Below, one piece after another: positions 62,080-63,176 of a stretch of 64,000 bases of DNA (its first letter is position 1; each line of letters starts with the position of its first letter). The translations under genes were made by a program, and so were the position numbers. The stretch is from Octopus sinensis (lineage: Eukaryota): contig NC_043024.1 in assembly GCF_006345805.1 (NCBI RefSeq), positions 2,852,001-2,916,000 of the forward strand. The letters run 5' to 3'. The notes beneath the pieces were generated by a model that ran no database searches, was not told the origin of the DNA, and saw nothing but the letters and a program-made list of their open reading frames with translations.

Positions 62080-63176
62080 ATGTATTATACAGGAAAGAAA
62101 TCATATCAGTGTGATATCTGTGGCAAATCATTCTCTCAAACATCTAGTTTGACTAATCACAAACGTATTCATACAGGTGAGAAACCATATCAGTGTGATA
62201 TCTGTGGTAAATCTTTCTCTCATACTAGTAATAAAACTAAACATAAACGTATTCATACAGGGGAGAAGCCATATCAGTGTGATATCTGTGGAGAATCATT
62301 CTCTCAGAATCAGAACCTAACGAGTCACCATCGTATTCATACTGGGGAGAAACCATATCAGTGTGATATTTGTGGTAAGTCTTTCTCTCGTAATAGTGCT
62401 GTAACTGAACATAAACGTATTCATACAGGGGAGAAACCATATCAGTGTGATGTCTGTGGTAAATCTTTCTCTCGTAATAGTGATGTAACTGAACATAAAC
62501 GTATTCATACAGGGAGAAACCATATCAGTGTGATATCTGTGGTAAATCTTTCTCTCGTAATAGTGCTGTAACTGAACATAAACGTATTCATACAGGGGAA
62601 ACCATATCAGTGTGATATTGTGGTAAATCTTTCTCTCATAATAGTGCTGTAACTAAACATAGACGTATTCATACAGGGGAGAAACCATATCAGTGTGATG
62701 TCTGTGGTAAATCTTTCTCTCGTAATAGTGATGTAACTGAACATAAACGTATTCATACAGGGGAGAAACCATATCAGTGTGATGTCTGTGGTAAATCTTT
62801 CTCTCGTAATAGTGCTGTAACTGAACATAAACGTATTCATACAGGGGAGAAACCATATCAGTGTGATGTCTGTGGTAAATCTTTCTCTCGTAATAGTGCT
62901 GTAACTGAACATAAACGTATTCATACAGGGGAGAAACCATATCAGTGTGATGTCTGTGGTAAATCTTTCTCTCGTAATAGTGCTGTAACTGAACATAAAC
63001 GTATTCATACAGGGGAGAAACCATATCAGTGTGATATTTGTGGTAAATCTTTCTCTCGTAATAGTGCTGTAACTGAACATAAACGTATTCATACAGGGGA
63101 GAAACCATATCAGTGTGATGTCTGTGGTAAATCTTTCTCTCACACTCGTGATGTAACTAAACATAAACGTATTCAT
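62080..63176 (+). pseudogene. ZNF5 5' part: 13 finger repeats with three small indels
   Basis: -1 at ~62513, -2 at ~62597 and -1 at ~62618, all in short homopolymer/low-complexity contexts. May be sequencing errors. Confidence 0.75.

Follow-up and report, generated by a model that had tools for sequence, protein, structure and literature searches.

The 64,000-nucleotide stretch of Octopus sinensis DNA analyzed here (contig NC_043024.1, positions 2,852,001 to 2,916,000; hereafter the window) is free of Ns and contains five C2H2 zinc-finger genes, all encoded on the same (+) strand and all composed of 84-bp units: ZNF1 (7197-9137), ZNF2 (16195-18387), ZNF3 (26526-28634), ZNF4 (41812-44600) and ZNF5, which starts at 62080 and is cut by the end of the window. 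A regular-expression scan for the pattern C-x2-C-x12-H-x3-H with TGEKPY-type linkers and 28 codons per unit revealed between 13 and 26 finger units per gene, and the Pfam families zf-C2H2 and zf-H2C2_2 matched the ZNF genes with E-values down to 1e-219. ZNF2 (26 units) and ZNF3 (25 units) are intact paralogues with an uninterrupted frame through the array and were used as controls, ZNF3 serving also as the outgroup for polarizing differences between ZNF4 and ZNF5. In ZNF4, which consists of a 5' array, an insert and a 3' remnant, and in ZNF5 the frame is interrupted by a 0.76-kb insert and, in the case of ZNF5, also by frameshifts. Protein database searches with the ZNF4 array and with the piece of ZNF5 that follows the frameshift returned only generic C2H2 proteins with at most 64% identity and no usable orthologue, and no record matching the ORF of ZNF5 or of ZNF4 turned up in exact-sequence look-ups.

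The ends of these genes deserve some caution. All five ORFs (starting at 7197, 16195, 26526, 41812 and 62080) begin with an identical peptide, four codons past a stop. The ATG is located inside a decayed, out-of-frame finger common to all five genes, so it is only a putative start codon, and it overlaps the sequence TATTATACAG|G, a plausible splice acceptor; given this resemblance, the real 5' exon and the real start codon may be elsewhere. At the other end, the normal stop of the family is apparently a TAG within a linker (GGATAG at 8973-8978, 9057-9062, 18307-18312, 28554-28559 and 44469-44474), ahead of one or two more finger-like units, and the last units of each array would therefore be untranslated remnants.

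Self-BLAST of the window showed a tandem cluster with graded similarity between its units. Flank identity amounted to 98.5% for ZNF2/ZNF3 and to 96.6% for ZNF3/ZNF4, and long alignments comprising gene plus flanks put the similarity of ZNF1 to the other copies at about 86-91%. The youngest duplicate pair consists of copy A (29545 to about 48257), which contains ZNF4, and copy B (from 48258), which contains ZNF5; the offset between them is about 20.3 kb. Both copies carry, upstream of the gene or inside it, an AT-rich microsatellite, a 6-kb LINE and the 0.76-kb insert within the finger array. When aligned with MAFFT, the flanks of ZNF4 and ZNF5 were 98.9-99.8% identical, with 79 mismatches in 12,185 aligned bases: 44 of 8,413 positions differed in the upstream 8.4 kb (99.5% identity), 33 of 2,954 in the 3 kb further upstream (98.9%), and 2 of 818 in the insert plus its 3' side (99.8%), where a (CAT)2 length difference was found in addition. 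With 99.7% identity between the two inserts themselves, the near-identical flanks and the shared insert that had been claimed for this pair were clearly present.

Within the flanks the divergence is patchy (0.1-1.8%), being lowest in the LINE body and rising to 1.2-1.8% both in the 5' part of the LINE and over the 2 kb that precede the array. At 35428-36209, copy A differs from its equivalent in copy B by 14 substitutions in 0.8 kb (1.8%), whereas the adjoining segment 36210-39842 shows 3 substitutions in 3.6 kb (0.08%). This pattern suggests gene-conversion patches, either between the two copies or with other LINEs, or uneven polishing. The preserved element had been called Tx1, and at the domain level it is indeed a LINE, with Exo_endo_phos, RVT_1 and zf-RVT in its ORF2 (Pfam); the closest protein match to ORF2 had 39% identity. 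In copy B, ORF2 (1130 aa, 56070-59462) is intact, whereas in copy A (35782-39174) one nonsense substitution at 37768 (T versus C) divides it in two. Since ORF1 is intact in both copies, the LINE of copy B looks potentially active. The AT-rich microsatellite (TA/TATATG-type) extends over about 2.4 kb in copy B (51275-53629, GC 9%) compared to about 0.8 kb in copy A (32562-33336). The insert is retroposon-like and on the (+) strand, starting with (CAT)7 in ZNF5 (63177-63939) and with (CAT)5 in ZNF4 (43081-43837). The head of the insert belongs to a dispersed repeat, of which the window contains at least 10 further partial copies, and as a whole the insert is composite, comprising the (CAT)n run at the junction, the dispersed head, a 62-bp tandem repeat in 2.3 copies and an internal 180-bp duplication of about 91% identity. 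The (CAT)n at the junction could be an antisense (ATG)n tail, and an ARAGORN search found no tRNA-like SINE heads.

Such similar copies raise the question of whether ZNF4 and ZNF5 represent the two haplotypes of a single locus, placed in tandem by the assembler, in which case the differences described below would be allelic variation of a coding minisatellite; the same mechanism of unequal exchange would apply, but it would have produced polymorphism rather than divergence of paralogues. Many marine invertebrates have a heterozygosity in the range of the patchy 0.1-1.8% divergence of the flanks, and the microsatellite length changes, (CAT)5 versus (CAT)7 and the AT-rich tract of 0.8 kb versus 2.4 kb, would also fit. 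However, there is neither an N gap nor a contig break between copy A and copy B in the window, and the whole cluster is made up of tandem units of graded age (98.5% for ZNF2/ZNF3, 96.6% for ZNF3/ZNF4 and about 86-91% for ZNF1), so that another real duplication is the default expectation. We therefore consider the haplotype explanation unlikely, though it retains some weight.

The ZNF4 array (41812-43080) contains 15 C2H2 units, among them LNQHLTK (three times), QNHSLTT and NTSNVTQ, and ends at the insert with the junction finger HTSDVTK. Its ORF (41812-43218, +) encodes 468 aa with 15 fingers that are collinear with fingers 1-15 of ZNF3, and it enters the insert for 45 codons before reaching a stop. 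Beyond the insert, two fingers of the 3' remnant (43838-44600, +) are truncated, and a TAG at 44400-44402 ends the frame prematurely, before the normal stop of the family is reached. The three LNQHLTK fingers of ZNF4 (units 6, 8 and 10; 42262-42681) are 63/63 identical and spaced by 168 bp, with other units interleaved; this triplication is absent from ZNF3 and represents an earlier event of homogenization or amplification in ZNF4.

The ZNF5 array (62110-63176, +) consists of 13 units of 82-84 bp, with RNSAVTE helices in six units (4, 6 and 9-12), RNSDVTE in two (units 5 and 8) and HTRDVTK in the junction finger. The coordinates proposed for it, with the ATG at 62080 and the final array base ahead of the insert at 63176, were confirmed, and so were all finger counts and helix strings given for both genes (15 fingers for ZNF4 and 13 for ZNF5); the contrast between the two arrays is far beyond chance. 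Eight units of ZNF5 (5-12) are amplified RNSAVTE derivatives, namely five RNSAVTE, two RNSDVTE and one broken HNSAVTK. TRF reported a period of 84 for both arrays, with 13.1 copies and 91% internal matches in the case of ZNF5 and 79% internal matches in the case of ZNF4. After the insert, the ZNF5 array resumes (63940-64000, +) with the linker EKPYK and the start of a PHSGNLN finger, which is cut by the window end.

As assembled, the ZNF5 ORF (62080-62571, +) encodes only 163 aa with five fingers, followed by a frameshift and a stop. The cause is a cluster of small deletions in units 5-7 (62512-62619, +): in unit 5 a 1-bp deletion changes GGGG to GGG at 62512-62514, in unit 6 a 2-bp deletion removes AG after 62598, and in unit 7 one base is missing after 62618. 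Due to these three deletions the frame is lost, five fingers are all that the ORF encodes before it ends at 62571, and unit 7, which reads through a stop, is destroyed. All three are located in short runs or dinucleotide repeats, and consensus errors are therefore possible.

This observation bears on the explanation that assembly errors created all or part of the ZNF5 array, which would then consist of mis-joined or mis-polished 84-bp repeats that might even derive from reads of another paralogue. Three deletions of 1-2 bp in a span of 110 bp, each in a homopolymer or dinucleotide repeat and in the most repetitive part of the array, are what such an artefact might look like, and the three 84/84-identical units found there would be difficult to polish. 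On the other hand, a 2.4-kb AT-rich microsatellite and two 6-kb LINEs were assembled free of gaps, suggesting the use of long reads, which would span the 1.1-kb array; the array meets both flanks in register; and it includes an ancestral-looking HTSNKTK unit and a consistent chimera structure, neither of which a collapse would produce. Consensus errors may thus be present in the most repetitive 250 bp of the ZNF5 array, but the absence of gaps, the graded cluster and the consistent chimera pattern favor a real array in a real duplicate, and we judge an artefactual array to be improbable.

A unit-by-unit comparison clarified how the two arrays are related. The anatomy of the units, their identities and their lesions can be read directly from the assembled sequence. 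Only the first three to four units are alignable as ZNF4/ZNF5 orthologues, and, apart from the three small ZNF5 deletions, all length differences between the arrays are in-register multiples of 84 bp. Units 1, 3 and 4 of ZNF5 are the orthologues of units 1, 2 and 3 of ZNF4, with 0-2 differences per 84 bp: in the first pair the linker alone differs, the second pair is 84/84 identical, and in the third pair 2 bases differ. The divergence of these shared units is in line with that of the flanks. An accelerated point mutation in the array was also considered, and it was rejected because orthologous units are only 0-2 bases apart. Unit 2 of ZNF5 (HTSNKTK; 62194-62277, +) has no counterpart in ZNF4. 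A 15-mer linker marker, GAGAAGCCATATCAG, occurs at two sites only, 41911 and 62263, where it closes ZNF4 unit 1 and ZNF5 unit 2, respectively; its confinement to these two ends indicates that ZNF4 unit 1 is a fusion left behind by an in-register 84-bp deletion in ZNF4.

Units 4-12 of ZNF5 form the amplified block (62362-63113, +), which is derived from the RNSAVTE unit corresponding to ZNF4 finger 3. Units 9-11 are mutually 84/84 identical, unit 8 is one base and unit 12 two bases off, and across the block units differ from each other at 0-7 positions. The 24-mer that encodes RNSAVTE is found once in ZNF4, eight times in ZNF5 (allowing at most 1 mismatch) and is absent from the rest of the window. 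In the amplified units, the 5' end of an HTRDVTK unit (GATGTC...AAA) is joined to the helix-coding part of RNSAVTE. There are seven variable columns among units 4-12, and at positions 7, 9 and 18 the variation consists of recombined parental states; of the remaining columns, one is a GCT to GAT change (A to D) common to units 5 and 8, and three occur in unit 7, where the frame is shifted.

The junction finger of ZNF5 (HTRDVTK; 63114-63176, +) is 63/63 identical to finger 3 of both ZNF2 and ZNF3 and differs from the junction finger of ZNF4 at 6 of 63 nucleotides. The junction fingers of the two genes (HTSDVTK versus HTRDVTK) thus do differ, as had been noticed, but not by an S-to-R mutation: the ZNF5 finger is a separate unit.

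The identity of this finger with a finger of other paralogues might be taken to mean that a paralogue outside the window, whose array was rich in RNSAVTE and had HTRDVTK as its last unit, replaced the central part of the ZNF5 array by ectopic conversion. Such patchy exchange is also suggested by the divergence in the 2 kb preceding the array, which at 1.2% exceeds the 0.08% of the LINE body. Yet no donor was seen within the window, the upstream differences mix ZNF4-specific with ZNF5-specific changes, and a chimera formed within the array requires no external donor. Conversion from an external array is thus doubtful at best. A conversion tract from ZNF1-3 into the upstream region of ZNF5 was likewise rejected, as the differences there are a mixture of copy-specific changes.

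Comparison with the outgroup ZNF3 indicated which of the two arrays is the derived one. Units 1, 4, 5, 9, 12, 14 and 15 of ZNF4 differ from ZNF3 units at 0-2 of 63 nucleotides and unit 11 at 3 of 63; the matching units are in nearly the same order, the sole exception being ZNF4 unit 9, and the synonymous divergence of matched units is about 0.10. The order of the ZNF4 units is therefore ancestral rather than recently acquired, and the ZNF5 array is derived. A recent conversion of ZNF4 by ZNF2/ZNF3 was rejected, since a synonymous divergence of about 0.10 by far exceeds the divergence of about 1% between the two copies. On the retained units the dN/dS of ZNF4 versus ZNF3 is about 0.08, a value that is biased because units were picked for similarity and to which we give little weight.

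In order to judge whether finger arrays of this cluster are generally unstable, the ZNF2/ZNF3 pair was used as a control. This pair is older, with flanks (98.3% and 98.6% identity) more diverged than those of ZNF4/ZNF5. Nevertheless, its arrays consist of 25 collinear units with 99.0% identity and a single 84-bp indel. Stable arrays between older flanks show that finger arrays in this cluster are not intrinsically hypermutable. The dN/dS for ZNF2/ZNF3 was 0.32 overall, 0.15 for scaffold codons and 1.27 for contact codons. Judged from these codon ratios, the scaffold is under purifying selection, and the value for the contact codons is a well-known sign that selection on DNA-contacting positions is either relaxed or positive. 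In this comparison (16225-18387 versus 26556-28634), 7 of 12 non-synonymous changes are located in the contact codons (-1, 2, 3 and 6), which account for 4 of 28 codons. The intact arrays of the cluster are structurally conserved, with contact residues alone drifting or adapting, and only the lineage interrupted by the retroposon shows a burst of unit-scale events. An array turning over faster than its flanks, as first proposed, is therefore found in this pair as far as structure is concerned (at least 5-6 whole-unit events versus a point divergence of 0.5-1.2%), but not with respect to point substitutions (0-2 per 84 bp).

We conclude that, probably, unequal exchange of the minisatellite type reshuffled the finger units in a truncated and presumably non-functional gene copy. 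ZNF4 and ZNF5 would be very young copies of one member of the tandem cluster, which had been split by a retroposon before the copies separated. After the separation, the 84-bp units would have behaved as a minisatellite, undergoing in-register unequal exchange or replication slippage. For the ancestral array and the order of events we infer the following course. The ancestor would have carried a single RNSAVTE unit, followed by HTRDVTK (if present), by QNHHLMN and further units, and then by the insert. ZNF4 would have lost the HTSNKTK unit, and HTRDVTK as well if it had once been present (one unit, possibly two). ZNF5 would have lost about 11-12 units in a deletion that joined the HTRDVTK unit to the insert; ACTAAACATAAACGTATTCAT is present at both presumed boundaries of this deletion, namely at the 3' ends of HTRDVTK and of the last finger. 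The RNSAVTE unit would then have been amplified in ZNF5 over several steps. Exactly the chimera that was amplified would be expected if an RNSAVTE unit and a neighboring HTRDVTK unit underwent one unequal crossover, with the crossover point in the stretch shared between unit positions 18 and 28. The array has thus been reshuffled and not re-mutated. That the ZNF4/5 ancestor possessed an HTRDVTK unit is itself deduced, and ectopic conversion from a ZNF2/3-like finger would fit, too; whether the junction unit arose by deletion or by conversion, homologous exchange between finger units would be involved either way.

Most likely, the ZNF4/5 locus is a gene copy that is truncated and decaying, with little constraint, if any, which would explain why unit-scale events and three frameshifting deletions were tolerated. 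When compared with the intact paralogues, its disabling lesions are the shared insert, the decayed 3' part of ZNF4 with a premature TAG, and the 1-, 2- and 1-bp deletions in ZNF5. Small indels amount to 3 in 1.07 kb in the ZNF5 array versus 10 in 8.4 kb in the neutral flanks, a difference that is not significant (Poisson P about 0.14), and the rate of small indels matches the expectation for unconstrained sequence. Against a dead copy stands the 5' ORF of ZNF4, which is intact with its 15 fingers and whose retained units look constrained when compared to ZNF3. A truncated protein could still be made from it, and if the three ZNF5 deletions are consensus errors, ZNF5 would have an open frame of 13 fingers as well.

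The pair had been interpreted as a PRDM9-like, hypermutable specificity module, and in its strongest version the ZNF5 array would be a functional, hypervariable DNA-recognition module whose rewriting was selected for new specificity. Its structure is that of an 84-bp coding minisatellite as in Prdm9 (PMC3890296), and the contact dN/dS of 1.27 versus a scaffold value of 0.15 in ZNF2/ZNF3 would be in its favor. Among ZNF5 units 4-12, the contact codons hold three of the seven variable columns (helix -1, +3 and +6), but this enrichment falls short of significance (binomial P about 0.07), and unit 7, which is frameshifted, accounts for two of these three contact sites. Furthermore, the ZNF5 ORF is broken as assembled, both arrays are truncated by the retroposon, and the ZNF5 array is a homogeneous run of one finger. 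A Pfam search covered the ZNF ORFs together with four open segments of 49-84 aa, which are among the longest in the interval from 59.4 to 62.1 kb, and detected C2H2 families only and no PR/SET, KRAB or SSXRD domain; exons for such domains may be located further upstream, beyond the LINE. Together with the stable ZNF2/ZNF3 arrays, these findings do not sustain the PRDM9-like interpretation, and we regard a functional module of this kind as very improbable.

In summary, ZNF4 and ZNF5 provide a clean, datable case in which a few whole-unit recombination events rebuilt a finger array while its surroundings barely changed, with an internal control in the same cluster, the stable arrays of the intact ZNF2/ZNF3. 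The case is a useful illustration of this process and a warning for the annotation and assembly of zinc-finger clusters. The process as such is already well documented in vertebrate poly-ZNF genes and in PRDM9, and it opens no new question. The ZNF5 copy is probably dead. There is only a slim chance that the ZNF5 deletions are consensus errors, that both truncated genes are expressed, and that ZNF5 is a newborn protein of about 9 fingers with one specificity. In that event, ZNF5 would be predicted to read a short tandem DNA repeat, and the locus would be an invertebrate coding minisatellite that makes DNA-binding specificities in large jumps, possibly with polymorphism between haplotypes: a PRDM9-style dynamic without PRDM9.

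When compared with known systems, the ZNF5 array shares some features with PRDM9, whose array is an 84-bp coding minisatellite that changes by unequal recombination or slippage (PMC3890296). Units 4-12 of ZNF5 are 84-bp units of similar homogeneity (0-7 differences; 91% internal matches in TRF), whereas the arrays of ZNF4 (79%) and of ZNF1-3 do not show this degree of homogeneity. In contrast to PRDM9, however, the frame of ZNF5 is broken, its array is interrupted by a retroposon, no PR/SET, KRAB or SSXRD domain was found in the segments scanned, the new array is homogeneous rather than diversified, and the sister arrays of ZNF2/ZNF3 are stable. The pair also resembles the paralogues of poly-ZNF families such as the KRAB-ZNF genes, which are likewise tandem C2H2 genes with in-frame gain and loss of whole 28-codon units and for which finger duplication or deletion has been described as 'a common path for divergence' (PMC3126818). 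Pseudogenized copies are common in poly-ZNF families, and ZNF4/ZNF5 resemble them here. Contact residues are the most variable zinc-finger positions (PMC10547256), as is also the case in ZNF2/ZNF3. Unlike in KRAB-ZNF genes, no KRAB, SCAN or BTB effector domain was detected by Pfam in the ORFs scanned, and the repeats look like those of a non-vertebrate host. The loss of about a dozen units and the gain of eight at a flank divergence of at most 1.2% make this case an extreme one. Like non-coding minisatellites and other tandem repeats evolving in concert, the ZNF4/5 arrays gain and lose units in register, have chimeras where exchange occurred and contain runs of identical units; unlike in those, the units are former coding modules, and each event rewrites the predicted protein. 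Finally, the cluster resembles the C2H2 expansions of coleoid cephalopods, which are large tandem clusters of many-fingered genes, rich in SINEs and LINEs and without vertebrate effector domains (PMC12513265, PMC10547256), and the setting of ZNF4 and ZNF5 appears to be a lineage-specific tandem ZNF expansion.
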